Shown piece after piece: positions 25,504-58,299 of a stretch of DNA of 64,000 bases. Position 1 is the stretch's first letter. Each line of letters begins with the position of its first letter. Source of the stretch: Trichosphaerium sp. ATCC 40318 (Eukaryota; Protista; Tubulinea); NCBI GenBank assembly GCA_038496445.1, contig JALMLS010000387.1:36627-100626 (forward strand), given 5' to 3'. The notes beneath the pieces are model-generated. The model searched no databases. It was given only the letters and a program-made list of their open reading frames with translations, and had not been told where the DNA came from. The position numbers and the translations under genes were made by a program.

Positions 25504-25907
25504 ATTTGTTGATATGCACTAGCTGAGACGCAATACCGATCGAAAAAATATCCCAAAAGCATAGCATTTATGCAGTAGTTTAACGCTGCGAATTAGCTAT
25601 TTGACGCACGCATTATACCCACGGCAATCCTCACGTTGTGATACGCTTGTTATACGCTTGTTATACCTCATGTCGCTTGTAAAGTTGCCTAATAACTAAT
25701 TTAATTGTAGGTACGTTAAAATAGGGTCCATTTGCTTGGTATCACGATCTGGCATTTCGCTCTACCATCGCAAAAATTTTACGAAACACGCTATAACTAC
25801 TTCGACTGACATTATACTATGTTTCTGTACGTTAATTGTGAACTAGGACTTTTTTTGAATGCGGTTGGTATTTATTGTTGACGACAAAAGAACGTTTGAG
25901 TTACAGC

Positions 25908-27290
25908 TTATTCGTTTAGTAGGTCATCATCACAGATAGAAGGTTGGGTAGTCTCAGGACCTAAAACAATACCATCCACGATATTGTTGATGAACACACC
26001 ATACTGATGGTGAGCATTTGCAGCGGTCATGCCTTCGGTGGATAATACAGGCATAGTAGGAAGGGTAAATGTCCCGAAAGGCATATCAAGCGTCATTGGA
26101 TCATGAAATTGCTCTACATCCATACCAATAGTGAGAATATCGACAACGAAATCCTCTTCATCTGGGAGAGTAGGTGCAACAAGGTCATCATCACTGTTTA
26201 CAACTACAAAGGTAGTCAGTAAAATAAAAAACAAAAAAAAACAAGATTGCAAAAAAAAAAAAAAAATTCGTACCAAAAGGCATAGGAGGTTGTTGATTGG
26301 TGTTGTTGACGACTGGTAAAGATGGTAGTACCAAAGCTTCAGCGACAAAGCTTTCAACGTTTTGAGTGCACGTTGGAGGGTTTGGTGAAGCCTGAGCGCA
26401 GACGGAAGGAGGAACGTGAACCTTTGGTTCTTCTTTCACTTCGTTGATAGTACTTGGACTGTTGGCAGGCGTCCCGGAGACTGTTGGAAATAGCACAGTT
26501 GCTGGAGCGCAGGTTGGCTTCTTTACACGCTTGCAAGGTTTCGTAGTGGTGCGTGGAGCATCTTCTCGTTTGCGTCTTGCCCTACGGGCGACTGTAGGAC
26601 GAAGGTTGTTGGCGGCAATCCATTCTTTTAAATCCTTACTACGGCGGTTCCTATTGTTGTTGAACCAAGTCTTGACTCTTTCCCAGGTGATGTTGCAGAA
26701 GAAACCAAGGCGTTGTCTTTCGGCGAAGCTTGGGTATGGATCCTAATGATTGCAATGAGTACGAGAAGGCACAAAGACAAAAAAAACAAAGCGAAAAAGA
26801 AGAAAAAAATACTGAAACGTACTGTAGCGTGTTGAAAGAGCCAGTTTGTTAGGATGAGTGTAGCACGGTGAGAGAGAGTTTTAGAGGCAGCAGGGAGAGA
26901 AGCTACATTGTTGACCTCGTTTTGAATCATGGTGTACAGCCTGCTTTGTAGAAGAAGTCTCATCTGATTGAACTTTACGTCAAGTTGTTTGAGGTGGTTG
27001 TTCGTTTGTTGTTGAGTAAGAAACTCTGAAAGAGGTTCCTGAGAGGCTTCAAGCTTAAGGAGATGTACTTTCTCCTTGATGAACTTTTCAAGCTTGGCAA
27101 GCCTTGCCGTGTATTGAGTGAACATAAATGCAGCTTTCTCTTTGATGAGTTGAGAATCGAGAGCACTTCCAAATCTTTCAAAAACAGCTTTTTGAGTTAA
27201 CGGAGGTATGATTGATTCCATGAGACTCATATTACTAAGTTCTTTGTTTAATGCTTCCATAGGCGTATTTGGTAGGGCTTTGACTTCCAT
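25908..27290 (-). CDS. TALE homeodomain protein with PBC-B-like domain (class A, copy A1; 3 exons)
   Basis: Spliced HD: RATLILTNWLFQHAT|DPYPSFAERQRLGFFCNITWERVKTWFNNNRNRR (intron 26743-26822). Upstream KFNQMRLLLQSRL; Pro-rich linker and acidic tail. Confidence 0.9.
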
Positions 27291-28099
27291 GTTCGAGTTC
27301 TATTGAGGAGAGGAGTTGTTATCCGTGTGTAGCTTTGATAGAATAGTTTTTAGGCACAAAAACTTCAAAGATTTTGACCTTAAATGCCTCCTATTTCGGA
27401 CCAACCTCAACAACACCACGAATGGAATAGTGCAAGTGATTACTTATACGCCAATGTGTATATTACGCGTTTTGTTATCCCGTAATCAATCTAACAGTTT
27501 TCTGAACGCTAAGATTTGACTGGAAAATACGTAGCGAAGCAATGTGGTTGTTTGCGATGGGTTTTTGAGGTTAATGTTACCAACATTTTGGTGTTTAGAA
27601 AAGCGCTGTACTACTTCGTCATAAGCAAAAATGCGCATGCGTAGATGCTACATGGGTGTATGTACGTCCTATATACTTCGGGTACTAGAAGTTCCGTTTT
27701 AGGCATGTTTCGAAAAGAGAATTTCTTCCTTTGTGTGATAGTTTGTAGTCCCGTAATACAACACTTTTTAAAAGCTCTTTTTATCGGAAGAAACTGTAGT
27801 TATTCAATTTTGTCTGCGGTTCTTAATTAGGTCTGTTTTATCCTCAATGATATGCACTTAAACGTGTACAACGCAATCTACTATGCGCACAAACTGTTAG
27901 AGCTTTTTTGCTCAAATAATTATAAAATTAGTTCTACAACGCTAAAAACGTTCACTTTCGCTCATGACGGAGAAAGTGATTGAATTGTAAGTGATTGAAC
28001 AATAGTCATCGATCTTTAACATAAAAAGCAGAAATCTTTCAAATTCTATTTATTCATTGTCTATTATACATTATTTTTTCGTTTTTTAGCTTATCGCAA

Positions 28100-29763
28100 T
28101 CACAATAAAGCTAAATGAAGCTGAAGGGAAACTTCTTTGTTTTTTAACGAAGAAGCTTTACCCAAAGCGTCACGCCCAACTTCTAGAATTTCTTTATAAT
28201 CATTCACAACAGCTGAAGTATGTGTTAAAGTTTTGCCTAAAGCCTTAGAATCGGAAAGAAGTTTCTGTTGATCATCGATTATTCTTGTCGATTTTTGAAG
28301 CAAGACACTCGCTTCTTCAAGTTTTGTTCTCACCTGAGGCTGGTCTAACGTGACGTTATCACGTACTCTCATGATTTGAGCGACTTGGTTCACTTTGATG
28401 CTCATTTTTTTGTATTTTTCGAGACAAGCCGTTAATTCCTTTTCGAATGAGAATAGGTTTGTAGCTTGTACAGAAACAATAGAGTCACCAAACGCCTAAA
28501 CGGAAACTAAGCCTAAAAAGGGCAAAAATATATGATTGATTTTAAACAACAAAGAGAATTCTGTAGTTGTTTTCGAGAGTTGTTTTTTGTGGAAAACTCA
28601 CCTTTTGTTTGCTGTTTTCAAGCTCCGTTGATTGTTTTTTTAGTTGGGTACGAAGTTGTGAAACATTCTTTGACACTGCATAAATCTCGCCCTAAAGGTA
28701 GCATTAGTACGCAACTAGATTCGTAGTTGACGTACAAGGGTGTTTGCTGTATTCGCTTTTTTGGCGAGTGCTGCATTTTTGTTCATGAGTTGCCATTGAA
28801 GGAGTTGGGTTTGTAGAAGCTCTATACGCTTCATTTTGGTATCCTTAGACTTTTCCATTCCCATTCGGACTCGCTACAAAAAAAATAAATAAACATTCTA
28901 AAAACAAGTTGTTCCGGGCTTCTACACGAACAGAAAAAATTGAAAAAAATGCCACGCTATGCACATAATACTAATGTACTCATAGAAAACTTTTGAGCTT
29001 CAAACGATTTGATACAAACGCGCGAAAAATCGGTTAATAAAAATAGCATTTTAAATCCGAACGTACTGTCGTTAACTTTGAACGTTGCGGTTTGTTTTGT
29101 GCTGGTTTGGTAGTAGTATTGACTCTACGCTTTCTCACAACAGGAGTTTTTGTAAGAAAAGCTCTGGCCTGATTTCTCGCATTTTCACTTGCAAACGCGC
29201 TATTTCGTACTGGTTTGCGCTTCTTCATCGAAGAACGAAGCGTACCAGCTACTACCGGCTTTGGCTTTCGTTTGTGGGCCCAGTCACCTGTATGGCGGCC
29301 GATGAGTCGTCGTTTCAAAGCTTTGAGTTTAACGTACGTGTTATCATCGTTGCGCGTCTTCCATTTGGTGCTGGTTGGCGTTTTTGCAGAGCGGCAGGAA
29401 GCATTGTAGCTCTTCGTGTTTGTAGTGGCGGAAGTTGAGTAAGCGGCTTCCTGGTTTTCTTTGTGGTTGATGATGGTTGCATGTAACGTGAAGCAACATG
29501 TTTAACTACAATTCAGTGTGAGCAATTTTACCGTTATTCTTTCTTTACCTCTTCTACGTTTTGCTGTAGACGGTGCTGCAGTGCGTTTTGGTACAGTTTT
29601 TCGGTTATACGGCGTCTCAAGCAGAATATCATCAGTAGGTAGCCGTCGTTGCTTTTTTGCTAACAAATATAAGGTTTGAAGGTAGTTTTATTAGCGTTTT
29701 ACTTGTTGAGCTAAATAATCGCTTTTGAACTGATCCAAATGGCGTTTGCGAAGACAGAGACAT
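28100..29763 (-). CDS. Augmin subunit 8 (HAUS8/AUG8, QWRF-family)-like protein, multi-exon
   Basis: Basic N-terminus with VASRYMQ; coiled coil with LLQTQLLQWQLMN (QWRF-like), then EIYAVSKNVSQLR. Confidence 0.65.
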
Positions 29764-29931
29764 GATACAATCAACGCGGGAAACAAATCAAGTGGTGTTT
29801 TCAAACGAAGTCATTTTTTTTTATACAATTGGTTTATTGACGCATAGGTAGCCCATTTACATTTTTATGAGTATCATAGTACTCTTGTACAAGTAAGTGA
29901 TGAGCTAGCGTCGTCGCACGTGAAGGTTTTT

Positions 29932-30480
29932 TTACTCTTCGCTCTTCTTAGCGCGTTTCTTGTTCTTTTGTCTTTGCAATTCTTCCTCGGCCTTGCGCAT
30001 CTTGTACGCCTTCTTGGTATCTCCACGACGACGGCGGGTATTGGTGAACCATACGCTGATTTGATCAACTGATAGGCCAATATTTGCGGACATTTCTTGC
30101 TTCACTGTGAAGTCTGGGTACGGAAGAGGTAGATGACCTTGGTACCACGTGTCCATTGCCAATTTGGCTGCATCAGAGTGATTTGCTGGCCTATTATTTC
30201 CAGCTGTCGTTGGGATGTTAGGGTCAAGGTCTGTGTCGTAGTCATCAACTAAGGTGTCAGAGTATTCGCCAAGCGTTATAGATTGCGCTAACTCTGCTAG
30301 TTTCTCGTCGGTACCAGCCTTTAGAGCTCGTTGACGCTGTAAAGCTGCGGAATAGATTTCAACAAATTTTTGTTGAGCTTCTGGACTAGCGTTAATTTCG
30401 ACAGGGGCTATACTAAGAATGTCGGTGTGTTCGGTGAGGTTATCTAGTAGTGCACGGTGAACTTGTTGAGGTGTTGCCAT
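29932..30480 (-). CDS. Small intronless TALE homeodomain protein (class B, copy B1)
   Basis: RPANHSDAAKLAMDTWYQGHLPLPYPDFTVKQEMSANIGLSVDQISVWFTNTRRRR. ATG at 30480 (MATPQQ). Confidence 0.92.
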   Translation of the reverse strand: MATPQQVHRALLDNLTEHTDILSIAPVEINASPEAQQKFVEIYSAALQRQRALKAGTDEKLAELAQSITLGEYSDTLVDDYDTDLDPNIPTTAGNNRPANHSDAAKLAMDTWYQGHLPLPYPDFTVKQEMSANIGLSVDQISVWFTNTRRRRGDTKKAYKMRKAEEELQRQKNKKRAKKSEE

Positions 30481-31131
30481 TGTTGTTTGTTTGTATTTAA
30501 CTGATTTATAATAGGATTTCGCCTCGAAAAATTTGATACGAAAACTCAATAATCACTCAAGATTGAAAGACAATTATAGTTTACGCGTATAGATGGTAAA
30601 AAAGCCGAAAGATTCATATTTTGTTAAAATTCCTACTAAAGTTTATAATATCAATCATGTGTGGTACGCTGGCCTGCCTCTATAAAAGCTCTACATACGT
30701 TCTCTAAGAATTTCGAGTGTTATTTTCCGACTTACCTGTTTTGGAGAAAAGAGAAAATTATCTATCAATGCGCTTACACTACGCGCAAAATGTAGCATAT
30801 TTTATGATAGATAAATGTAAGTTGCGAAAAAAAAACTTAAAATAATCGCTTGTATACTAAAACACTGATATCGCTAGTCATGCGTAGTAGAACCATTACT
30901 CCCAGTTTCAAAGCGAACTAATCTGATTGATAGGAAATACGGAATCGCTTTCTGATGCTCCAGAAGTACATAAAATCGCTAAAAAAACACATTACGAATC
31001 GTAAAATTTGGTTTACATGTTAATTCTCCAAAAGTGGAACCAAGAATTTGGGTGGACGAGGGTTTTACCCCCAAATGCAAAGCTACACAAAAACAATCTA
31101 TCAACGACCTCAACCACTCCTTACACGACCA

Positions 31132-32494
31132 ATGGAAGAAAATAAGCAAAATCCACCTGTTAATCAAAAAGCAATCGATAAGCTGGCCGAAAGCTTCCAA
31201 AACGCTACGATAACGGAAATTCGTGACGTACCAGGAATCGTACCTCAATTGCAGCGAGCTCAAGTACTCTCGAGGTTCCCAGGAGTTACTTCAACCGAAA
31301 TTCTTGAACAGAAAATTTCGTGGCTGTTCTCGCAATATATTGGTGCTCTTACCAAACTCGAAGCTATTGTAGACGCAAAGGTCCAAAACCTGGCACGTGT
31401 ACTAGCCAAGCCTGGAGTCGCAAAGTTATTTCCAGAAGACTTAAAGAAACTCAAACTGCATGTGGTGTCGACTAAGTTCAATCCCGTGCGCATTGAGTAC
31501 CAACAAAGACTTTTCAAAGCCGTTACCGCCGAAATCGAACACCAAAAGTCTATTCCTGCAGATGGAAGAAGAATTCCTCATCGCGCGCAGCGTATTCTAA
31601 CCAATTGGCTCTTTGTTCACGCAGCAGTAAGTTATCAATCACGTATTTATTAAATGCTCACATGCTTGTTAGAACCCTTATCCTACCGAAGCTGAACGAC
31701 AAAAGCTTGCGTTTGTTTGTAATTTGACTTGGGCCAAAGTTAAGACTTGGTTCAACAACAACAGGAACCGCCGTCGCGAGGACTTGCAACAATGGCTTGT
31801 TGCTCGTGGCATCGTACCTGCTCCAAATGCACCAAGACGCCAAGCACGAAACGCCAACCCTGTAGCCAATCACGCTCCAAGACGAGTTAGAAACACCAAC
31901 CCTGTAGCCAACAATGCTCCTACTGCTGCCCCTCTCAACACTCCAACATCTCTAGCCCCTGTTGCGCGTAATACCGCTGTTCGTAACCCTAACCGTACTC
32001 GCAAGTTGAAGACGATTAAAAAAGAAAAGAAGTACGTCGAGGAAATATCTCATGAACCTCCTCAATCAGGTGCACTTCCTACACCGCCTGTACCAGCAGT
32101 CATCAGCAGTGCCAACGTTGTTTATCCTCGTACCAGTACGTTTGTCAGCAGTAGTTACAACACTTTTTCTTATTGCTACATAGCCACTTTTCCGCCAGAT
32201 ATTCTTACTGCACCTGTGCTCGAGCTAGGTAGTGCCTACATCGAACACGAAACCAACTTTCTCACCGATGGAATGATCCCAGCACTTGGTGGCGATCTAG
32301 CAATGCCCGATAGCACTTTGCTTACGTTTCAAGAGCCGCTAGAGATGCTGTTAAATCCAATGGGAGAATTCACAGTATCAGAAGATGTGAGGATTAACGC
32401 CAATGACGTAAATGAGCAAAATGCTACAGTACGCGTAGATGCCTTTGTGACTGGCCTCGTAGACAACTTTGTCTTTTATGATTCTGACATTTAA
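31132..32494 (+). CDS. TALE homeodomain protein with PBC-B-like domain (class A, copy A2)
   Basis: RAQRILTNWLFVHAA|NPYPTEAERQKLAFVCNLTWAKVKTWFNNNRNRRR (intron 31627-31672). KFNPVRIEYQQRL upstream; acidic tail. Confidence 0.92.
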
Positions 32495-33175
32495 TTGGTT
32501 TGTCCTATGTAACTCTCGAGCAATAAATTGTATTGAGTTAATTGCTCTTTCTTTTGTTTCATTTTAACCAACGCTTCCTATAGTATTCTTTGAAATACAC
32601 TATGGTTACCGTCTCTTGTAAAAGGTTGTCGTAATGTTGTTGAATGTGTTTGTAGGTTATTGAGGAAAAAACTGATCCTTGCTATGTTTAAAAGCAATTT
32701 TCGTGCCACCTACAATTTTATTGTCGTTATAAGAAGGGACTAGCATAGGCGAAAAAAGGAAATTGACTGACGTACGTTTATTCCCATTTAAACAATACAA
32801 TATTTTTGTGAGGGAGGCAAAGGCAGACTGTGCTGTTTTTCCGTTCCCAGTTTTTTACTGTTCTTCATCTGTAAGTCATAGTATTACTACGCATCCCACT
32901 GAACACACATTGCCATAGAAGGTGCCAGTGCAAAGAAAGGTTGTCTGGGTTCTAATCTGAAGAACCTTTGTGTACTAGTTGTGTTGTCGCTCTATTGGTG
33001 CTTTGTGGCTGAAATCAATGATGATAAGCCATTTAATTGCAGGTGGGCACGTGTTGCAGCAATTTGTACTCATGTTTAAAAATTCGCTTAAGCAACTGTT
33101 TTTGGATCAGCTAGCAAAACGTTCGAAAACTGTATGCGACAGTAGTGTATTTTAAGTCACTGCAATCTATAATAA

Positions 33176-33478
33176 CTAAGCATCTTGTGTACCAACTAGT
33201 TGTTTTGATGTAGTTGCAACTAGGATAGTATGTATATTCGATTCTATGTCTGTTGTACGAGCGTTGGTAAACCAGTCATACACTTGGTTAGTAGTCAGAC
33301 CAGATTGCTGAGCTATTCCATCGTATTCATCACCACTTGGGTATGGTTTTGGAATAAGGCGTTTAAACCATTGTTCCAACACTTTGATTGCAGATGGGTG
33401 AATAATACGGCCCCTTGTTGGTGCTCTTTTTTGGGATTCTATCGTTGTATGTGCTATCGTATCGGCTGAACATTGCAT
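33176..33478 (-). pseudogene. N-terminally truncated class B TALE homeobox gene (B2)
   Basis: HPSAIKVLEQWFKRLIPKPYPSGDEYDGIAQQSGLTTNQVYDWFTNAR. It lacks the family N-terminal region and the basic tail. Confidence 0.65.
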
Positions 33479-33964
33479 GGACCACCAAATTCTAATTCAG
33501 TACAAAATAGATTGGTGTTTGGCAAAAAAAAACGTGATGTGAAATTTGTTTGTGCACTAATGTCTTTTTGTGAACTAATTTCTATTGCACATAGCAATCG
33601 TTTGTTTTCTGTCTCCTTCAAAGCTTGTGCGACTGACAAATCAATGCATAACCAATTACATAGGTGCCGTCACCTCCCTACATGTGCATTTGTAATCAAT
33701 ATCTTGTTTCAATTCAGTCCAAAGCAGGTATCGCACGTGATTCTCAACTAATACATCAATTTGATATTTTGGAATGGACTGGTCAGCTCCTTAGTGCCAT
33801 CGACTTTCCTTCTACTGTGCATCGATCTGTGGTTATAAAGAAGAGAATGCCTGTTGGTGGCCAACTAAAAGGATGTAATAATATTATCATCAGTTACAAT
33901 CAAAGGTAAACATGAGATCATAGTTTATTGTTACTAATCGAACAAGTAGGACAGTACATAGGTT

Positions 33965-34498
33965 CTATTGTTCAGTTTTTACACGCTTGGCTTTGCTTTC
34001 TTCTTTTACTGAAGCCAATTTGCGTTTGTTTTCCTTGTGGGTATGTCCACGGCGACGGCGGGCGTTAATAAACCACACTCTAACTTGAGTAACACGTAGT
34101 CCGGCTTGCCTAGCGATTTGAATGTACTGATGATGATCTGGATATGGCTGTGGAATGCGAGGAGTGTACCAATCTTCCATGACTTGAATGGCATCTGCTG
34201 AATGATTCGCTGGACGATTGTGACCATTCGTATCAGGTATGGCAACATTGTAGGTGGTTTCGTAGTGGTGAATCATCCCTTGAAGGTCCTTAAGAGGTGA
34301 TTGTTCTTGATCGGTTGTTATCTCTTGCAAAAGGTTGGCAACAATCTTGTCACGTTTTTCAACAAAGTTGAGACACATTTTAGTGAACTTTTCAACGAGA
34401 GCTGAAGCGACGTGTGAGATATCAGGAGCAAATCCAATTACTTTATCGCCGTTGATCTCTACTAGCTTCTTGTATGCTTCAAATGCCATGTTGTTCAT
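33965..34498 (-). CDS. Small intronless TALE homeodomain protein (class B, copy B3)
   Basis: RPANHSADAIQVMEDWYTPRIPQPYP..GLRVTQVRVWFINARRRR. Start at 34498 by alignment with B4. Confidence 0.92.
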   Translation of the reverse strand: MNNMAFEAYKKLVEINGDKVIGFAPDISHVASALVEKFTKMCLNFVEKRDKIVANLLQEITTDQEQSPLKDLQGMIHHYETTYNVAIPDTNGHNRPANHSADAIQVMEDWYTPRIPQPYPDHHQYIQIARQAGLRVTQVRVWFINARRRRGHTHKENKRKLASVKEESKAKRVKTEQ

Positions 34499-34568
34499 GT
34501 TGATGATGAGGTGTTGTTGTTGTACTGTTGCGATAATAATGATTGTTTGAGTGTACAATATTAGACAA

Positions 34569-34596
34569 CCAAATTCTAATTCACTGTTGATTGGTT
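34569..34596 (-). promoter_or_regulatory. Conserved upstream element of class B genes, containing a CCAAT box
   Basis: AACCAATCAACAGTGAATTAGAATTTG is 26/27 identical to 36070-36096 and lies ~70-100 nt upstream of both ATGs. A variant occurs at 33485-33516. Confidence 0.55.
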
Positions 34597-35458
34597 TGCT
34601 TCTATTTTTATATATTTTCCTTTCCATTTGATAGACGAATACTATCAATCTATACATATTATTGATGGACTTATTTGGATCAACAGAGGTGAGCGGTTCG
34701 AAAAAATCAATCATCACTGAACAAAAACAAACTTTTTTCTTGAGCAGAAACTGAGCTTTCTAGCGTTTACTACCAGGTACATTGCTTGCTAGTTTAAAGT
34801 TTAGCCTAACTCTAACAAATATTCAATATAGACAACAACGACATTGTGGCATAGTTCGTATACGCTCAGAAAGTTCACAAAGGAACGCTATCAATCTGAA
34901 TAAAACAAAATCTCAAACCAATCACCGCTGATCGAAAACAGCTTTCACTCACAAACTGGAAAACGGAATAATATCAATCTATCGTCGACCTGATAACCAG
35001 CAATTGTTTTGTTTACAGAAACATGTAAAGCGACTGGTACAAAAGAGTCGTAGGTCTTAAAACCGCGTCGGGGGAACAAAATGAAATCATTTTACGCAAA
35101 GATAACCTCTTTTAGTCGAAAACAACAAAAAACAGCTTTCGGAGGTCGGTTTACAGTATTGAAGGGAAATACGTAACAACAGAACAGTTTGTTCGGTAAC
35201 GAGAGCAATCTTGCGTTCTTGCAATTCCAAAACGAGCATGTTTTGAATTTTTGCGTTTTACATCCTTACCCGACCTGGGAAGGATATCTACAAGCTACCA
35301 GAGGTAGCCGAGAATACATATCGTACATTAAACACTCTGTAAGGTACCGAAAAGAGAAATAAAAAAAGAACTCGAGAAAATACAGATTAGGCGATTTTAA
35401 GATACAAAATATTCGTTTTTATTAATTTGACAAGGGTTGTAATAGATAAAAGAATACA

Positions 35459-35998
35459 TTATTCGTCTGTATCATTCTTTGCTCGTTTTGCATTTCTTTT
35501 TGCTTTTTCAGCTTCCATTTTACGTTTGAGGTCCTTCCTTGTATGTCCACGGCGACTGCGTGTGTTAGAGAACCATACTCTTACTTGAGGAATAGATAGC
35601 TGCGCATTTTCAGCGATTTCGACTATTTGGTGGCGATCTGGATAAGGTAGTGGAAGATGTAGGGTGTACCAAGATTCCATTACTTGAATTGAGGCACGCG
35701 AATGAGCCGCTGGGCGAACGTTACCTTTTTCGACAGGTATAGCTGGGTTATAAGTGTTTTCATACTGGTGTAGCATCCCGTTAATGTCGTTTAGCGGTGA
35801 TTGTTCTTGGTCTCTTGCTATTTCTTCCAGAAGGTTGGCAACACTTTGTTCACGTTTTTCTACCAAGTCGAGGCAGGAGAAAACGTATTTCTCAATGGTG
35901 GCTGGGTCAATGTGTGATATATCAGGTGCATCACCAATTACTTTATCGCCGTTTATTTCTACTAGTTGCTTGTATGCTTCGAATGCCGTGGTGTACAT
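35459..35998 (-). CDS. Small intronless TALE homeodomain protein (class B, copy B4)
   Basis: RPAAHSRASIQVMESWYTLHLPLPYP..QLSIPQVRVWFSNTRSRR; tandem paralog of B3. Confidence 0.92.
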   Translation of the reverse strand: MYTTAFEAYKQLVEINGDKVIGDAPDISHIDPATIEKYVFSCLDLVEKREQSVANLLEEIARDQEQSPLNDINGMLHQYENTYNPAIPVEKGNVRPAAHSRASIQVMESWYTLHLPLPYPDRHQIVEIAENAQLSIPQVRVWFSNTRSRRGHTRKDLKRKMEAEKAKRNAKRAKNDTDE

Positions 35999-36069
35999 GT
36001 TGATGAGGTGTGGTTGTAGTGTGATTGATATTATATTGATATTTTTTGAGTGTAAAAAGTTGAGGTGGT

Positions 36070-36096
36070 CAAATTCTCATTCACTGTTGATTGGTT
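36070..36096 (-). promoter_or_regulatory. Second copy of the class B upstream element
   Basis: AACCAATCAACAGTGAATGAGAATTTG, 1500 nt from the B3 copy, the same offset as the two ATGs. Confidence 0.55.
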
Positions 36097-36970
36097 CTGA
36101 TAGATTTTTCGCCAATCGAGTGACACTATTATGAGCATACACTGTAAACAACGAAATAGCATTGCGGCTGTACAGGTATAGCCAGTTTAATCTCAAACTG
36201 GAACAGCTTTCGGACAAATATTAAATTCACAAAACTAACAATGAGCTAACAGCGTGCAAACATACGCTCATGTAGTTTTTAGAAAACATCGAGAGCGATT
36301 TATGAGATATCAATCAAACTCAATCAGCACTGAATTTGTTCCTTCTAATCGCTCACTTCGTCGTATCAATCTACGAGTTCACATTTTGAATATACTTTTA
36401 AAAAAAGCGCTATCTTTTGAAAAACCAATCTATAGTACAAAATACGCGTTGATGGATAATATACGAACGTTCTACAGTATATATAAGCACCTTGAATTCG
36501 TTGTAAAAAAAAATACAACCCACACAGTAATGTTTATGTCTGGGTCCTGTACTAGCAAGCTACGAATATTTTCGTTCGTGGGAACCTTTTTGGGAGTTGT
36601 TTACGCCAATTCCAAAACGAGCAAGTTCCGATTTCTGCATTTTACGTCCTTTCCGTACGTGAACAGAATTTAACAACAAAGGTACCGTTCGATAAACAGG
36701 TTTCCGGCGCAAAATGCAGCATAAGGAATTTTGTTATTTTAAAACATCGATACAGACACAGTTTACCTTCGAGGCGTACTTCTAGTAGCATAGAAAGCTT
36801 TAATACGAGTAAACTGTTAGATGGTTACAAAACTAAACAAAATCGCTAAACGAGTGCATCTACGCCTAGGGATACCATAACACAAAACAGAACATTATAA
36901 ATCAAATATTTAATTGTCATTACTTTTTTTTTGTACAATACCGCTGCCGCGGCGCCATAGGCACAAGAGC

Positions 36971-37492
36971 TTACTTCTTCTCTTGTTTGGTTTTTTGACG
37001 CTTGGCAGCTTCTTTCGCTGCTTCTTCCTCGCGTTTACGCTTAGCTCTTGCTTCCTTGATACGAGTACGCCTGTTCTGAAACCACAAGCTTACTTGCCCT
37101 TCCTTTAAACCGCACTCAATAGCGATAATCTTCTTTTCTTGAGCTGTAATATAAGTTTTCTTGTTGTACCATTCCATTAGATAGTCAACAGTATCTTGTG
37201 GATGATTTCTTGGACGTCTTCTACGAGGTGGAGGAGGTAGGTTTTCACCAGTTGCCTCATTGTCGAATTGCTCATACAACACGTCGTCTTGGCCGAGTCC
37301 AAGGTTGGCTATCATACTTTTGATCATGTGTTCTGATTCAGCATCGATGGCAGATTGTTCGTGGATTGATAGTGCACAAACTTGTTGCACTTCAAGGCTG
37401 TTAATGTCACCCAAGGATTCTGCGTCAAATTCAACGGTTTCGGATGTATTCATTGTAACCATTTTCTCTATCATTGTGGCTGTTGTTGTCAT
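36971..37492 (-). CDS. Non-TALE (60-aa) homeodomain protein, intronless (class C)
   Basis: RRRRPRNHPQDTVDYLMEWYNKKTYITAQEKKIIAIECGLKEGQVSLWFQNRRTRIK; no 3-aa loop extension; Q50. Confidence 0.92.
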   Translation of the reverse strand: MTTTATMIEKMVTMNTSETVEFDAESLGDINSLEVQQVCALSIHEQSAIDAESEHMIKSMIANLGLGQDDVLYEQFDNEATGENLPPPPRRRRPRNHPQDTVDYLMEWYNKKTYITAQEKKIIAIECGLKEGQVSLWFQNRRTRIKEARAKRKREEEAAKEAAKRQKTKQEKK

Positions 37493-38107
37493 TTTTGTTG
37501 AGAGTTGTTGTTTCGACTGTTTGATTTGTGAATTATGATTTCTACGCCCAGAAATTTAATAAAAATTGAATTGTTCTTCACGTAATACGCTGGAAATACC
37601 TATCAATCATAACCTTGCCTGATCCAAATCAATCTGAAATACGTTTAATCGAAAGCGAACAATGTGTCTGAACGACTTCAACGACTATAAAAATGTATAA
37701 TAAAGAAGAAAGCTAAAAATCACTTTTTTTTTTTCTACTCGTGATAGAATATCTGTGTCAATCAGAACTGCGGTAAACCTAAATTAAGCTTGAATTCCGC
37801 GCGTGAAACATACAAAAGGTATAGCACCGCTTTTAAAAAGTTTAGCCCGAAAATGCAAAGAATAAATGCAAGGCCTATAAACAATAACTAGGCGCGTGTT
37901 GGGAAAGTAAAGCAGTCTAAAGTTGCTTCTTTACAAAAGTAACAACATTATTCCAAAAAAGGCAAATTTTGAATTTCCACTTGTTTTATTTGGAATAACA
38001 GTTGTTAAAGCGTAAAAAGACAAGCAAGATGCATCAAATTACTTCTGCGTAGTACTTTGGTACAGTTTTGCTTTGATATAATCTATCTAATCGATCTAGG
38101 TAGCTGA

Positions 38108-39372
38108 ATGGACCAACCAGCATCTGTTGCGCTCATAAAGCAACTGCTTGCGGCGGTTAAATCAGTTCCAGGCAATATAGAAATTGTTCAGCCGCTTGTG
38201 AAAGATGATATACCCGGAATGCTTAACGGCGAACTACATAATCCAGTACTTCAGGAAAAGTTCGATTGGCTTTTCGATAATTACATTGAACAGCTCGGTA
38301 ATGTAGAAAAGGTGGCAAGGAAAAAAGTCTGCAAACTCAACGAGCTACTTTCTGATGCAGTAACCTCACAATTCTTCACACCTGAAGAAAAAAAGTTAAA
38401 ACTTCTTACTGTTCTCTCAAAGTTCAATGCACCTCGACAAAAACTACAGAAACTACTTATAGATGCACTAAACAAGGACATCAAAAGGGTGCCTTGTATT
38501 AAAAAAGATGCTGACACGAGAGCGAGAGCAGTTATCATTGATTGGCTTTTGGAAAACTCGGAGGTACAATTTTTTTTGCATAGTTTTATTTTTTGTTCTC
38601 GCTGTTCTCTTACCTGTGTCCTCCGCAGAATCCATACCCTACGGATAGAGAGAAGAAAAAGGTAAGTATAACTTGCATTTCTAAAGCCAGAAGCTCATGT
38701 ATGGGTTAGCTTGCGTATTGTAGCAATATGACATTTGCCGCTACAAAAAAAAAGATTGGTGCAATCAGAAACAAACGAAAAAAACAGTTAACGGAAGTGA
38801 ACAAGAAAAAGAATAAAGAACTTCGGCCAATAACCAAAGCTGTTGTATGGCCTGAAACAGATCCTTGTACACTCACAGAGGAAAACAAGCTCACTGTACC
38901 TCTAAGAGAAGAAACAGGTTTTCTTATACTACCATCAACTCCTTCTACAGAATCGTTTACGTCCTTATCTACAACGTCTTCTACCCTACACACATGTACA
39001 CCAACCGAAGAACTTACATATAACACATACGAGATCCTTGAAGCGCCAATACCAGATCAGGAATTGCCTGAAGGTAGAAGTCAATAGTTTTTTTTGGTTT
39101 TTTTTTAACGTGATTTGCTAGACAACCATAACAGCTTCACTGAGGTTGAACAGAATATATTTTGCAGTGATGAATGGTTAGACTCTTCACATGACACGTT
39201 AGAAACATCTGATAACACAAAACCTCTCTTCAAAGAAGTGTCAGATTCGCTATCAGATACGTTTGTACTAGGCTATGTTAGCGAAATTGCGCTTGATGAA
39301 GGGCTTAATACAGAAACTGACAACATGAACATTGAACACGATACAACAATGAGCGATTTATGGTCTTTGTGA
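38108..39372 (+). CDS. PBC-B-like TALE protein with a degenerate recognition helix (class A, copy A3; 4 exons)
   Basis: RARAVIIDWLLENSE|NPYPTDREKKK|LAYCSNMTFAATKKKIGAIRNKR. KFNAPRQKLQKLL upstream; acidic tail. Confidence 0.8.
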
Positions 39373-40077
39373 ATGACTCCCTAGCAAGGCGCCAAATGTA
39401 CATTTAGAAGAATAAAAGAGAGACTGAAATTTATTTTAGCTTTTATTAATTGTAAAACCCGTGTCGTTGTGTTCTAGACGTACAGAAAGTACATTGACGA
39501 GCGTAGGATCACCAATACCTTGGTTGTTGTAAGTTGCGAAAACGAACTCCAAAAAAGGAGAATTTTTATCTTAGCTTTTACTACGCTCAGTTGTTGCTGT
39601 GTACAATTAGACAAGACATTTAGTATTTACGAGTAGGCTTCATTTATTTACGCGCCATATAAATGCAAACTACAAAAAGTGCTATTATAAGAACATTCAG
39701 ACGTTTAGATTGACGAGGAATTTCAATCTTGCAAAGTGATTGCAAAAATGGTGAAAGCATAAATAAAAACAAACTATTCGCATAGATATCATTCGCATTG
39801 TCTTAACACTCGCGTATAGCGTCTGTCGGAGATGTTAAAATATATTTAAAAAAAACTTGTTTTATCGTCCTTCAAACACATCAAAAACCAAATTTATGCA
39901 AAAAGAACGTCAGCAAAAGAGTTATTCCTAATATTTACGAATTTTCAATAGTGAGTGCAAAACGTGTGAATAGATTTGGGTTGATATTAGGTTTTTAACT
40001 ACCCAAATTCTAGAACGAAAAAGAACATTAATCAAAACTCACTCAAACAACAAGCACTCAAACAACAAGCAACAAAA

Positions 40078-41350
40078 ATGGATGAAACTAACCACAACTC
40101 TATCACCAGCATTATAAACAGACTATCAGAAGTTTCAATCGCTCCAAAAGAAGAACACATAGTTCGTGTTGTTTCTTTGAACGACTTGATAATGCGATTC
40201 AATCGTCAGCTTACTACCCAACTTATCCAAGAAAAAGTCGATTATGTATACAGCCAATACCTTTTGTCTGTTAATAGCCTTGAAGCTATGGTAAGAACCC
40301 GAGTGGAAAGACTTCGTGAAATGCTTTCTGAAGACGAGGTCAAGTGTCTCTTCACAGTCGACGAAATCAAGATAAAACTGCATTCAGCTTCTTGCAAGTT
40401 CAACTCTGTACGTTTGGCATACCAAACCAAACTCTTTGCAGCTGTTGGAGCAGAGATTGCAAGACTCGCTACTTTGCCAACACACAAAAGAATTCCAGCA
40501 AGAGCAAAACGTATTCTCGTCAACTGGCTCTTCACCCACGCTGAGGTACGATTTTTATACAATTTTTTCACTCAAGTCGTAATTCTTGGTTGCAACTTTC
40601 TTCTTACATTCTTTTCTCTAGAACCCATACCCTCGCTTGGATGAAAGAAAAAGACTCGCTTACTACTGCGACTTGACCTGCTCTGTAGTCAAAACCTGGT
40701 TCAACAACAACAGGAATAGACGTCATGAAGATCTACAACAATGGATTGATGATGGAATGAACCAAGCAAACCCTGCTGTCACCCCTGTAGCCCCACCTAC
40801 AGCTCCTACAACTGCGCCGGCTCCTTCAGTGACTCGCGTTCCAGTTGTGCCTACTCCTACTCCAGCACCTGCTCCTATTGTAGCACCTGCTCCTTTCGTT
40901 GTACCTACTCCAGCAGCTGCTCCACCAGTTGTACTTGCTCCAAGACAAGCAGCTCCTCGCCCAGTAGTACGAGCACAACAACTTGCCCCAAGACAACATA
41001 GCGCACCTACCTCAACTAACCCTCAGCGTACGTCAAACTACTTCTATTAATCAATGTTACCTAGTACTTATTCCTTTTTTGTAGCTGCTAACGCACCTTT
41101 CGCAATGTACATCCAGCCTGAAGTTAACATGTTGACTGACGGCATGCCTGGATATCTTCACGCACCTACTGATGATGAATTGATGCCTCCTGTTTTCAAT
41201 GGTGCCATGTTACCTAGTGATTCTTTGGATGTTGAAATGCCAAACCAAGTGACGCCACAAAATGTCGATGACCTGCTTGCAGACTTTATCGATGATGCTG
41301 TAGATGTATATCTATTCGCAGACTTGGAACCATTCAACCTAAACAACTAA
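40078..41350 (+). CDS. TALE homeodomain protein with PBC-B-like domain (class A, copy A4; 3 exons)
   Basis: RAKRILVNWLFTHAE|NPYPRLDERKRLAYYCDLTCSVVKTWFNNNRNRR (intron 40546-40621). Pro/Ala linker and acidic tail. Confidence 0.92.
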
Positions 41351-41867
41351 TCTTATAAACCGAAACGTCCAAACCAGAAGAACAGAAAAAACACCAAAAA
41401 ACTTTACATACTTTTGTCTCATCAACAGCACAGAAATACAAATCTCGTTGCTCTCTTACATTGAAAAATCTTTAATAAAGTACCCATTAGTATCATACAT
41501 CGTAATTAATCATCAATCACATTATTACTGATAATAAAGAAATACCATACTACGAATTAGGGCACATGATAATCCAAAAGGTCACTTTGTATGAAATCAA
41601 TCTATATCAACGAATCAATCTAAGTACACACTTGTTGGCTGATAGATATTTGTAATCAATACTAGGGTTACCCTAGAAAAGATAATCAATCTGGTAACGA
41701 TAAGGGGAGGGGTCACTTGAAAAATGAAACGTGATGTTGGAGTTTAAAAAAAACTATTGTATACTTTTATTCACATTATTATAAATACAATCAAAGGCGT
41801 TCTTATGTACAGACACATCAAAACCTCGGTTTATGTCCTTTGCGTGTCAACTGTTATTACTACAGAA

Positions 41868-53990: not shown

Positions 53991-54626
53991 ATGACTAATA
54001 ACCCTCAATATTGTCATCTACTGCGTCTACCACTTGAGCTACAGCTTGATATCATTGATCTAGACATTCAAGTATACGTAAAATGGCCCATTTTATCAAA
54101 AACCACAGCAACGACAACAAGATTTGATAGCAAGCTTAAAAAGCATGGAAAATGGAAAAGAATAGCAAAAACTCCGGAATACTCTACTTCTTCTTCTCCT
54201 GTTGTACAAACTGCTCTTCAATATTATATACATGGTAAACGCAATGGTGAGAGTAAGAGGTGGGATGATTATAGCCGCTTACTTCTCGATTATAACTACG
54301 TTGATGGTGTAAGACATGGAGAGTACAAAAAATTTTACAATAATGGAAAATGTCGTATACATACTTGGTTCGTTAATGGTAAGTATAATGGCGATTATAA
54401 GGAATGGCATAAGAATGGAGTGTTGTCTGTGCATTGTACTTATGTCGATGGTAAGCAACACGGGGAGTTCAAAGAGTGGTATATGAATGGCGTGCTTGAT
54501 TATCATAGTTGGTACAAACATGGTAAGAAGCATGGGGAACATAAGGCGTTTTTTTGTGCTGGGCAGATGTATGATTGGTGTATATATGTCAATGGTAACA
54601 GAGAAGTTGATAAGATGAAGAAGTAG
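53991..54626 (+). CDS. F-box + MORN-variant (YwqK-like) repeat protein
   Basis: LLRLPLELQLDIIDL, then repeated Y.DG..HGEYK.W..NG units. Confidence 0.85.
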   Translation: MTNNPQYCHLLRLPLELQLDIIDLDIQVYVKWPILSKTTATTTRFDSKLKKHGKWKRIAKTPEYSTSSSPVVQTALQYYIHGKRNGESKRWDDYSRLLLDYNYVDGVRHGEYKKFYNNGKCRIHTWFVNGKYNGDYKEWHKNGVLSVHCTYVDGKQHGEFKEWYMNGVLDYHSWYKHGKKHGEHKAFFCAGQMYDWCIYVNGNREVDKMKK

Positions 54627-54936
54627 GCAGCTATCAGCGTCAATGATTTTGTTACAGAGTGAACAGAATCAACCTTTTTGTTAGTTTAATTTTTATCACT
54701 GGATACTTTAATAAATAGACAAGAATGAACTGTTACGACTTGTAAACCAATAAACTAGATAGCTACTTATCACGTCTACATTCAAGTTCGAAGATGTTGT
54801 ACAGAGTTGTACGCCCTAAACAGCTAACATCTATCTGCGAAAAAAAAGACTAAAATTTCCGCGAAATAGCAAAAGTACACATTGAATTGTTTCAAATAAA
54901 GTTTATTTACGTAGTACTAAAACACTATTGTCTTAG

Positions 54937-57454
54937 TTATGGCCAACAATAAAAGAGTTGTAAAACGACCAAAAGAAGCGCTACTGTTGTTGTAAGTGTA
55001 GTAGCAGAAGATATTGACTCGGTAGGAGCGGCTGTCATATCAGGTGGGTTCATTGGAGCATCTGTCACTGCTGGTTCAATAAACGTTTCAGTTGGTGCAA
55101 GCGAAGTATCAGGACACGTGTCTACTTCTTCAACAAATGTGACAACAACTTTACTATCCGGACCATCTAGTACTTTGTGAATAACATACTCTTCGTTTGG
55201 TTTAAGCAAAAAAACCACGTACCACTGTTCCCTAACGGAGGATTTTGTGAAAGAACTCTATCACCTAATCCGCCACAGAATATTGCATTATCGTTAAGCA
55301 GTCCACAATATCTAGGGTTATTTTGAGATGATGATTTACGGGTGAAACGATACAAACCTCATTCTTGGCATTACTGGGTAGTAAATCAAGTACGCTTGAC
55401 ACATTTCTTCACTTGATGCAGAACCAAATATCACATCTTCGCTTGAGCGTTCAGTGTTGAAAGTGCAGTGTAAGTTAATACGATCGCCACGTGATATTGT
55501 ATAGTTGACCTCTGAGAACTGTTGGAACGCTATTGGACAAAGTAAGCGAGTTGAACTGGCGAGAATCGAGTTCTTACCAAAGTCCCAGAAGTCAATACGA
55601 TTTGAAGATGCAACAACTTTACCATCACGTGTTATGTTTGTGTAAATACTTGAACCTGAGAACAAACAATATTTAGTTGTTGTCTTTCATATCACATAGT
55701 GGTCAGGCGTACCATACTCGTGCATGTGTAAGAAACTACCAATAACTGTAATCTCATCTTCCGCCCATTGGTCGCTTGTTGTACAAGCAGGAGAGCAACT
55801 TGTTTCAGTGTGATGCTATTGTAGCAAGTAAGCAAATAGATAGTTTTCCAACAACACTTACAGCAACTGAACCAGCAGGAATAGGTGGTAGAGCTAAAAT
55901 AGGATCGCCAATACTGATGATACCAGCTTCAATAGGTCTTAGATTTGTAGTTACAAATGCGGCAATGCCAGAGCTAAATACACATAAGTAAAGAAAAACT
56001 GTAGAAACCATACTTATCACGAACACCAGCATCAAGACTTGGATTATCATAATGAATCTCAACTACCAAATCAGTTGCATCTACTGGTCCACCCATAGGG
56101 ACACCTGAACAATGGTAAGTACAAAAGATAGAGCGATTGGGGAAAACACATACCAACATTTTCAGGGAATTTGTATCCTGTAGCGCCTTTTGCCCAAGCC
56201 CATACAAGTGTACAACCAACATCACCCTTATCAGAATCTTAGCAAAATACAGGCTGTACTATTTGGTACCTGAGGCGATTTACACTGAGCACCGGCTCCT
56301 CTCCACAACTCAAGTTTTGCACGACCTGCTGGATCTGAAGCCAGTTCTGAACAATCATGAAATAGCATGTGATGAACGTATTTCTCATTGTCAATCACAG
56401 GTTCAAACTATTGATATAAAACGTTATCTCTGAGAAAATACTAGGAATAGTGTGTACCATCAATGCGTGTAACTTTGTAAGATTAGATAGTTGCCTGTAG
56501 TGGCATGAATAAGTTGTGACTTCTGCTGGTATTTCGTAGTCTAGAAAACAAATGAGTTTTAATAAACTATATCTACTCTGTACCGCTCATAAGGAATACT
56601 TCCTTTGATGTCCCAGATGGTGGTGTGAGAGGTGAGTCACCGAAAAACACAATACCACTAGCAACTAATTTGCGTAAGGAACTAGTTTCATGGTGTTCTT
56701 AGTTTATAATAAAAAGGTGTACCTCTGTTTTGTCCATGGTAAGAGACTACATCATTTGCACCCCAAGCGGCTACAACTTTATTTACTCCACTGGTAATAG
56801 GGCGATCCTAGAAAGTTGTTAAAAAGTGTATTCCAAATGGCCAAAGTAAATTAAGTAGGACGGATGCTGTACATTTTGATCTTGAGTATCAAGCTTTCTG
56901 GTGACCTCAATGATTGTCGTTGTATTGCTTTGTTCACCAGACACTATTTTCCAATGCTGACAAGAGTCCTTGATTGGTGTAATGCCAGTCTAGACACCAA
57001 GCTAAGCACAATGCATTTCGTGATATCGCCTTACCTTTGTACAGTACATGTCGCTCACTTCAACTCTTCCAGTGGTGTCTAAAGCGTATTGTTAGGCACA
57101 AACATTGTGGTATTAAACAGTACGAATAGTGTACCATCAACAAAACCCCAAACCATATCAGATCCTCCCATGCTGAAAAAGAACCATTAGTACGACGCTA
57201 ACAAAGCCAGTTAAATCCACTTACCTTCCACTTGTTGGCTCGCCAATACCAAAAGAGATGTATCCAGTTGTCTTGACTTCAAACGCTAAGAAGATGTCTT
57301 GGTTTGCTTCATCAACACGCCAATACAAAGTGAAGATATCAGAGGCAAGAGTTTGTTTGTTTGGATATTCTTGTGGATCAAAAGAAGCCGATACACATAA
57401 GTAAGGTATAACACAGAATAGAACAAGTATGAATACTGTTGGAAGTGTTGTCAT
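54937..57454 (-). CDS. DOMON + copper type II ascorbate-dependent monooxygenase (DBH/MOXD1-like), multi-exon
   Basis: Signal peptide; DOMON (LYWRVD, GYISFG, MGGSD); Cu ligands YVHHML, EIHYDNP, LHMH and EEMC; hydrophobic C-terminus. Confidence 0.9.
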
Positions 57455-58299
57455 TGTTATTATTGTTTGAATTTATTGTCTTTTCGGTACAACTGTCCGG
57501 GACAATCAAAAAGATGTTTTTGTTCACGTGAATCGAAACAATTTTCCCGCAACTTTTTTTCTATTACTCGTTAGCGATTGAGTAGAATACCTCATATACT
57601 AAAAGATACAGCGATTTAATTTTTTATGGGAACGGGAAATAAAAAAACCCTCTTCTTTTAACATTGTCTTAAGTCAACTTTTTTTTTTTTTTTCGTTCAC
57701 AACATGCATACGATCCACAGCGTATACTATCGTCGACTATTGGCTTTTAGAAGTAATACAGGGAATATTCCAAAGCTATTTTTTGGATAAAGACAAGTAA
57801 TAGCGCCAACAGTTGCGAGTTTATTACAGGGAAACATTCAACAGTTCTTACTCACGTGTTTGTTTCAAAAGACAGCTGAGTGTATGTCCAACAAAAAAAA
57901 AACAACCGCTGATCCTTCACCATCAAACTATCTCGGTTGTCGCGTTGCTCTTTATTTCGGTATAAGGCTTCCTTTTTTTGAGATAAAGGAAATACACGAG
58001 ACCAAAAACAGTGCCTGACATCACGCACTTGTTAGAGAGATTATCAAACACATTCAAAAAACAAGTACGTACTACATAGGCAAATCAACACCAATACTAC
58101 TATGCCAACTACCATAGCAATCCTGAAGCCCAAGGATCCAAAGTTGATGTTAACTTCTATGGACAACAAATTAGAAAACTCACATAGTTAATAGAGATAG
58201 AGATTAACCGACAGTAAAAATAGCAGTTACTTTTACTTTTATTTGTCTACGCGCCGGGACTGACCCATTCTTAAGCGAGCCTACATTGGTGCTCACTAA

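Follow-up and report, generated by a model that had tools for sequence, protein, structure and literature searches.

A long-class TALE homeobox gene with a degenerate recognition helix in a homeobox cluster of Trichosphaerium sp.

In a homeodomain, residues W48 and F49 pack the core and N51 makes a near-universal base contact. Hence, a homeobox gene which has lost all three residues within an otherwise open reading frame raises the question of whether its product is still maintained and, if so, in which role. Such a gene, termed A3 (38108-39372, forward strand), is located in a stretch of 64,000 nucleotides of Trichosphaerium sp. ATCC 40318 (assembly GCA_038496445.1, contig JALMLS010000387.1, here C205), which is called the window throughout and whose positions are counted from its first letter. 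The window DNA (~37% G+C, short GT..AG introns) harbours a cluster of homeobox genes belonging to a long class with a PBC-like N-terminal domain, of which A3 is a member, and to a short TALE class. Within the assembly of 70.3 Mb this cluster is present in three colinear versions, found in the window and on contigs C301 (40.6 kb) and C292 (43.8 kb). A first-pass annotation regarded A3 and its divergent neighbour C as a pair resembling the HD1/HD2 homeodomain genes of mushrooms, with either a division of labour between both proteins or A3 as a dominant-negative, sequestering partner. Our analysis points, tentatively, to A3 as a selectively maintained, fast-evolving long-class paralog without canonical DNA binding, which would act through partners.

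Anatomy of A3 and loss of its recognition helix

The predicted model of A3 consists of four exons with an open frame of 367 codons, and its three introns (65, 48 and 48 nt) all display GT..AG ends and consistent phases. Exon 1 (38108-38563, +) encodes 152 amino acids comprising the PBC-like N-terminal domain and homeodomain helix 1 with the terminal residues DWLLENSE, and is followed by intron 1 (38564-38628, +, 65 nt, GTACAA..CAG, phase 0), the position of which is common to 14 of the 14 long-class genes. The short exon 2 (38629-38661, +) contributes NPYPTDREKKK, i.e., the TALE loop and the start of helix 2, before intron 2 (38662-38709, +, 48 nt, GTAAGT..TAG, phase 0) intervenes between homeodomain residues 33 and 34. 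Exon 3 (38710-39073, +) completes helix 2 and encodes the degenerate helix 3 together with a stretch rich in Lys/Arg and a linker rich in Ser/Thr. Intron 3 (39074-39121, +, 48 nt, GTAGAA..TAG, phase 1) precedes the acidic-tail exon as in most paralogs, and exon 4 (39122-39372, +) encodes this C-terminal tail, in which a diverged DxFVxGxV family motif and a stretch DSSxDTLET occur. Exons 1 and 3 were searched and folded separately, exon 4 was compared by script only, and a 46-residue join of exons 2 and 3 was used for homeodomain display and counting.

The recognition helix of A3 (38743-38778, +) reads TKKKIGAIRNKR versus VKTWFNNNRNRR in 11 paralogs, corresponding to the exchanges W48K, F49I, N50G, N51A and N52I with R53 kept. 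The loss of W48, F49 and N51 reported in the first-pass annotation is thus confirmed by the homeodomain alignment with intron 2 removed. Its further statement that A3 aligns to its paralogs without gaps holds for the homeodomain compared with three paralogs, a fit that hinges on removing the 48-nt intron 2 present in A3 alone among the 14 paralogs, whereas small gaps do occur in the N-terminal domain. At the decisive positions of helix 3, A3 carries K48, I49 and A51, and its KIGAIRNKR differs from the long-class consensus WFNNNRNRR; a PBC-type helix 3 is not found either, the consensus of PBX being WFGNKRIRYKK. The Pfam homeodomain model gives no match to A3 exon 3 at E-values up to 1. Because W48, F49 and N51 are lost, A3 should not bind DNA in the canonical way.

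The remainder of the homeodomain is retained: helix 1, the NPYP loop, helix 2, R53 and the basic residues following R53 are all present, and the junction of WLLENSE with NPYP is in register with 13 paralogs, including the three extra residues of the TALE loop. The replaced stretch and the region downstream are very basic (KKK...KRKK...KKKNK), and the Lys/Arg-rich part looks like a nuclear-localisation signal. By translation count, exon 4 contains 20 Asp/Glu versus 2 Lys/Arg. Loop, acidic tail and reading frame are therefore preserved in A3 as had been proposed initially.

All 14 long-class genes of the genome follow a common plan, in which an N-terminal domain of ~150 amino acids, ending four residues past WLF, precedes a phase-0 intron of 39-103 nt, a homeodomain exon opening with NPYP, a low-complexity linker and an acidic tail. 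For assigning the N-terminal domain, a family profile was built from all 14 domains and scored against 1.84 billion proteins, of which it matched only 12, and weakly (E 4e-6 to 8e-4). Pfam PBC is present in 10 of the 10 matches checked and a TALE homeodomain as well in nine of these, and two amoebozoan transcripts, from Luapelamoeba and Clastostelium, are among the matches. Aligned by hhalign to the PBC-only part of one match, the family covers 72 columns of PBC-B (probability 64%, E 6.5e-5). Although the Pfam PBC model itself does not match A3 exon 1 at E-values up to 1, 'PBC-like' is a fair description of the A3 domain, as the first-pass annotation had called it, since the family profile matches PBC proteins and aligns to PBC-B; the domain is a putative PBC member, for which no PBC-A counterpart was recovered. 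The AlphaFold2 model of exon 1 is a confident helical fold (mean predicted local distance difference test score 78) with helices at residues 46-81, 92-104, 107-127 and 137-149, and a fold search with this model returned generic helical bacterial clusters only (template modelling score up to 0.51). Outside the cluster, Pfam PBC matches were obtained at C32:352219-352437 (27.4 bits, above the cut-off) and C107:25291-25491 (21.6 bits), and the genome thus also seems to hold a conventional PBC-type gene. As a separate observation, the helix-3 codons TGG TTC AAC AAC AA(C/T) are the same at the nucleotide level, synonymous sites included, in 11 of the 11 canonical long-class genes (e.g., window 40697-40711 and 31748-31762), although these genes are otherwise only 26-45% identical in the protein sequence of the N-terminal domain; codon bias, gene conversion or an overlapping constraint are possible reasons.

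Loss of the recognition helix is not confined to A3. Degenerate helices occur in 3 of the 14 long-class genes, all with open frames, the other two being C292:27486- and C292:31292-, which carry the helices VKRWIINNAIRR and VKRRITTNARNRK together with altered loops (DTHP and DPHP). Both C292 genes are sisters (support 89/87), and a single origin of all three degenerate genes, i.e., a clade uniting them with A3, was rejected on exon 1 in the approximately unbiased test (p-AU 0.0025). Hence, as judged from these trees, the helix has been lost at least twice, and its loss has been tolerated. The tail of A3, however, is closest to that of C292:31292 (E 3e-4 over 26 amino acids), with which it has the DSSxDTLET stretch in common. 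For this reason, a mosaic ancestry of A3 by exon shuffling is possible, as is a long-branch error in its placement, which is uncertain because the branch of A3 is long.

Maintenance, decay and the possible mode of action of A3

The decay alternative assumes that a 48-bp stop-bearing insertion broke the homeodomain, that helix 3 then drifted and that the downstream frame is a mere remnant. Yet at the given base composition, the frames of exon 3 (122 codons) and exon 4 would be open by chance with a frequency of only 2e-4 and 3e-3, respectively, and the family motif in the tail can still be discerned. The interruption itself has flawless splice ends, namely the consensus GTAAGT and a terminal TAG, and falls into the usual length range of local introns (39-103 nt). 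Despite an overall identity of only ~26%, at which the paralogs are saturated, 12 of 15 N-terminal positions without variation among the other 13 paralogs are unchanged in A3, and the remaining three carry conservative exchanges (I to V, L to I and F to L). In the homeodomain exon, 6 of 13 invariant positions are kept, and the losses cluster in helix 3, so that the damage is restricted to this helix instead of being evenly spread.

Several observations nevertheless weigh against selective maintenance. The branch of A3 is the longest in the family by far (2.71 versus a median of 0.56), which is also compatible with relaxed constraint. Intron 2 is unique to A3, and when left unspliced, the frame stops at its 3' TAG, inside the homeodomain, which would yield a truncated product of 179 aa. 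Neither an allele nor an ortholog of A3 was found in the assembly or among the 1.84 billion proteins, and neither perfect nor one-mismatch copies of the PBX-type site TGATTGAT occur in the ~350 bp upstream of the A3 start codon or in the A3 introns. Additional support for decay comes from the 27-nt core of helix 3, where only 6-9 of 27 bases match the paralogs, i.e., the random level, from the presence of A3 in just one of three locus versions and from B2 as another, clearly truncated member of the cluster. Altogether, we regard decay as a serious but rather unlikely explanation.

It is quite improbable that A3 still binds DNA, be it with new specificity or non-specifically, by means of its basic remodelled helix 3 KKKIGAIRNKRKK, R53 and helices 1 and 2. 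Retention of R53 with the subsequent basic residues and the conservation of helix 1, loop and helix 2 would allow for this, whereas replacement of W48, F49 and N51 altogether, two of them non-conservatively, and the missing Pfam homeodomain match in exon 3 speak against it. Hardly credible, finally, is an assembly artefact in which the length of the A9 run (38746-38754) would be wrong. The region does contain A9 and A7 homopolymers, and the published Trichosphaerium assembly, if it is the same, was built from long reads; that assembly, however, was Illumina-polished (PMC10521059), and one A more or fewer leads to stop codons within 25 codons and to no WF.N helix. A compensated +5/-5 frameshift as origin of the A3 helix 3 (+1 frame KKKDWCNQ) was likewise rejected, as shuffled blocks equal its matches in 20-75% of trials. 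Also alternative splicing, which the first-pass annotation had considered as a potential objection, does not restore the helix, since neither an alternative exon nor any other coding potential for WF.N was found in any forward-strand frame of 37493-40077.

If A3 is indeed a maintained paralog acting through partners, we infer that it binds other homeodomain proteins, is imported into the nucleus and exerts a regulatory effect there. It would no longer bind the TGATTGAT-type sites of the cluster itself and would instead contact short-class homeodomain proteins, namely B, D and the non-TALE relative C. TALE proteins with PBC homology pair with MEIS/KNOX-type TALEs (Joo et al. 2018, PMC6219170), and the expected partner set is therefore the whole short class and not C specifically. 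In one option, A3 would equip a DNA-binding short-class partner with its acidic activation tail and its nuclear signal, while alternatively it might titrate such partners away from the DNA-binding long-class paralogs. The division of labour or sequestration suggested in the first-pass annotation finds precedents in Coprinopsis HD1 and in KNATM/PTS, and a second, independent degenerate lineage with open frames is present in this cluster; C as the specific partner is unsupported.

Gene C, its arrangement with A3 and the versions of the locus

Gene C (36971-37492, reverse strand) is a single-exon open reading frame of 173 amino acids with a non-TALE homeodomain (Pfam Homeodomain E 9.7e-12, residues 95-146), whose coding part was located by tblastn at 37034-37225 (-). 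Its helix 3 is WFQNRR and the 3-residue loop is missing, so the canonical non-TALE helix described initially is borne out. The protein starts with an N-terminal region of ~95 aa, which is followed by an RPxNH motif, the homeodomain and a basic AKR-rich tail. It aligns over its full length with the short-class TALE genes B and D, with a gap of exactly 3 residues at the TALE loop as the sole structural difference, and resembles them in size, in the RPxNH motif and in the AKR-rich tail. From this resemblance, C belongs with the short TALE class of the cluster and does not form a separate 'HD2' lineage. Searches for homologous proteins of C gave none at E-values up to 1e-3, nor was an exact database record encoding C found. 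The C proteins encoded in the window and in C301 do not differ at all (100% identity; 5 synonymous versus 0 non-synonymous changes, synonymous divergence dS 0.049), and a ratio of non-synonymous to synonymous divergence of 0.08 was obtained for the short-class gene B3. Another short-class sequence, B2 (33176-33496, -), is a fragment with an open frame of 106 codons which has no N-terminal domain and continues after helix 3 with TTDIES in place of the basic tail; B2 is probably a truncated pseudogene.

C and A3 are transcribed head to head from start codons that are 615 bp apart (37493-38107). Only the first 124 bp of this intergenic region (37493-37616) are common to C301. A perfect TGATTGAT site lies at 37602-37609 (-), 110 bp upstream of the C start codon, and is conserved in C301, where homology ends 124 bp upstream of the C start codon, just beyond this site; one-mismatch copies are found at 37518, 37628 and 37757. 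The window as a whole contains 11 perfect TGATTGAT sites compared to 3.5 expected, a number reached in 0 of 100 shuffles, and 10 of these 11 fall into the cluster (27209-41519), where most of them precede short genes or occupy intron 1 of long genes. Examples of the latter are 31634 in A2, C301:23758, C292:24286 and C292:33991; in total, C301 holds 12 and C292 holds 16 such sites, all within the clusters.

The arrangement itself varies between versions. A block of B3, B4 and C is common to the window and C301 with 95% identity, but in C301 gene C adjoins a D-class gene on the same strand instead of A3, and on C292 neither C nor A3 is present. The assembly contains just one copy of A3 and of the region upstream of it. 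Since C301 has C beside a different gene, C and A3 are not a conserved unit, and their adjacency is specific to one locus version. The identical C protein next to a different neighbour in C301 also implies that C is strongly constrained and invariant between versions, yet untied to A3. Of the HD1/HD2-like pair in the first-pass annotation, the divergent TALE and non-TALE genes thus remain, while the pair as such is not conserved in C301 and C292 and C is a short-class relative.

These findings bear on whether C and A3 form a dedicated heterodimer of the HD1/HD2 type, in which C would bind DNA and A3 would provide other functions or act as a dominant negative on C. The idea is suggested by the head-to-head genes with 615 bp between start codons, by the canonical homeodomain of C under strong purifying selection (0 non-synonymous versus 5 synonymous changes) and by the Lys/Arg-rich stretch and acidic tail of A3, which are reminiscent of the nuclear signal and activation domain in Coprinopsis HD1. 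It is improbable, however, given that C301 combines the same C, the same 124-bp proximal promoter and the same TGATTGAT site with a D-class gene, and that C292 does without both. Furthermore, C groups with the short class, which makes all long-class genes equally plausible partners for it; according to its translation, C also has basic clusters of its own and therefore no need of a partner for nuclear import. Even the basidiomycete model argues against such a dimer, for the HD1 and HD2 proteins encoded in cis by one allele are just the pair that is not known to dimerise. A complex prediction for A3 exon 1 with C returned 'no answer' (score 0.00) and counts neither way. C is one candidate partner of A3 among several and not a dedicated one.

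Comparison of the three versions over window positions 8490-48376 revealed a left flank (~8.5-25.5 kb of the window) with 94-96% identity in all three comparisons and a right flank (42.2-48.4 kb) with 97.5% identity to C292, whereas the cores of 17-18 kb are unalignable at the DNA level and differ in gene content. Identity drops toward the core from 95.5 over 94.9 and 94.3 to 89.5%. Gene order is A1- B1- A2+ B2- B3- B4- C- A3+ A4+ in the window, B0+ A+ A+ A+ A+ B- B3- B4- C- D- up to the contig end in C301, and B0+ B1- A+ A+ A-star+ A- A-star+ A+ D- B/D- in C292, amounting to 4-6 long and 4-6 short genes per locus version. On its left side, the core opens in the window (25554-28102) with the long-class gene A1 on the minus strand, where the other versions (C301:19263-20986 and C292:19195-20920) have the short-class gene B0 on the plus strand with an intron-split homeobox. 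A fourth homeobox type, D, with loop HLPHPMP and helix 3 WFNNRKARR, is found at C301:40394-40612 and C292:35263-35817 and is not in the window version.

A published draft of Trichosphaerium sp. (70.87 Mb, 37.69% G+C) was obtained from a monoclonal culture of this multinucleate amoeba using long reads, Canu assembly, Redundans reduction and Illumina polishing (PMC10521059). The simplest reading of the sequences is that the three versions represent retained haplotigs of one polymorphic locus; they look like alleles of a hyper-polymorphic locus and not like separate clusters, although very recent segmental copies are a possible alternative. Further to the right, contig C320 provides a 98% identical copy of window DNA. 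The window moreover includes a ~2-kb element (~55350-57450) with 68-80% identical copies on at least 6 contigs and a ~150-bp element (54008-54170) recurring on more than 30 contigs, and these elements at 54000-58000 are probably transposon-derived repeats.

Relation to known homeodomain systems and biological meaning

A close genetic analogy is offered by the homeodomain genes of basidiomycetes, such as those of the A locus of Coprinopsis cinerea, where HD1 is a TALE protein and HD2 a typical homeodomain protein. As in these pairs, a TALE and a non-TALE gene are transcribed divergently in C/A3, and the cluster exists in several very different versions like the basidiomycete HD locus. For Coprinopsis HD1, the homeodomain was found to be dispensable, while HD1 supplies a nuclear signal and an activation domain (PMC4915694). 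The statement of the first-pass annotation on mushroom HD1 proteins is hence borne out for Coprinopsis, and the basic stretch and acidic tail of A3 would correspond to the latter two parts. In contrast to basidiomycete pairs, though, the C/A3 adjacency is not conserved and the pair is not inherited as a unit in every version; C is identical in two versions without an allele-specific N-terminus; and C is related to the short TALE class, the usual pairing of this cluster being a long with a short TALE gene. The comparison with fungal pairs is meant as an analogy and not as evidence of common descent or of a mating function.

With respect to PBC-class TALE proteins (PBX/Exd), which together with MEIS/KNOX-homology proteins form ancestral dyads (PMC6219170), likeness is seen in the helical domain directly before the TALE homeodomain of the long class, in the profile matches to proteins combining PBC and TALE domains, in the PBC-B alignment and in the enrichment of the PBX-type site TGATTGAT in the cluster. 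On the other hand, Pfam PBC misses A3 exon 1, matches are weak (E 4e-6 or worse; hhalign 64%), and helix 3 of the family is WFNNNR versus WFGNKR in PBX, with A3 lacking even WFNNNR. Homeodomain-less TALE proteins, i.e., Arabidopsis KNATM and tomato PTS, sequester partners, whereby KNATM interferes with KNOX/BLH complexes (PMC4844364). Similar to these, A3 appears to keep its presumed partner-binding domain without canonical DNA binding; unlike in these, its homeobox is present, with helix 1, loop and helix 2 kept and helix 3 alone remodelled, and A3 retains a long acidic tail and is assigned to the PBC-like instead of the MEINOX side. Haploid-to-diploid switches based on two TALE proteins, such as Chlamydomonas GSP1/GSM1, also rely on two complementary TALE classes, one of them with PBC homology, which are thought to be heterodimeric (PMC6219170), but they use one gene per class in opposite gametes compared to 4-6 long and 4-6 short genes per locus version here.

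As A3 and both C292 genes demonstrate, members of this lineage-specific expansion of PBC-like TALE genes have repeatedly lost the recognition helix while the gene otherwise stayed intact. Provided that A3 is maintained as proposed, the principle known from KNATM or Coprinopsis HD1 would recur here in a new lineage and, within the dyad, on its PBC side.

More broadly, the diploid programme of algae, plants and fungi is activated by dimers of TALE homeodomain proteins. For amoebae outside the dictyostelids, nothing comparable is known to us, and the sexual cycle of Trichosphaerium is debated. It is conceivable, if doubtful, that this amoebozoan possesses a multiallelic self-recognition (mating-type) locus made up of TALE homeobox genes, of which the three versions would be alleles and in which long-class members at least twice lost their DNA-reading helix but kept the parts for dimerisation and activation. 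If true, a division of labour independent in origin from that of mushroom HD1/HD2 proteins would have evolved. Of greater consequence than A3 itself may be the locus, as the existence of three or more colinear versions, nearly identical in their flanks but unalignable in their cores, renders the question of a mating-type or self-recognition function in this amoeba testable.

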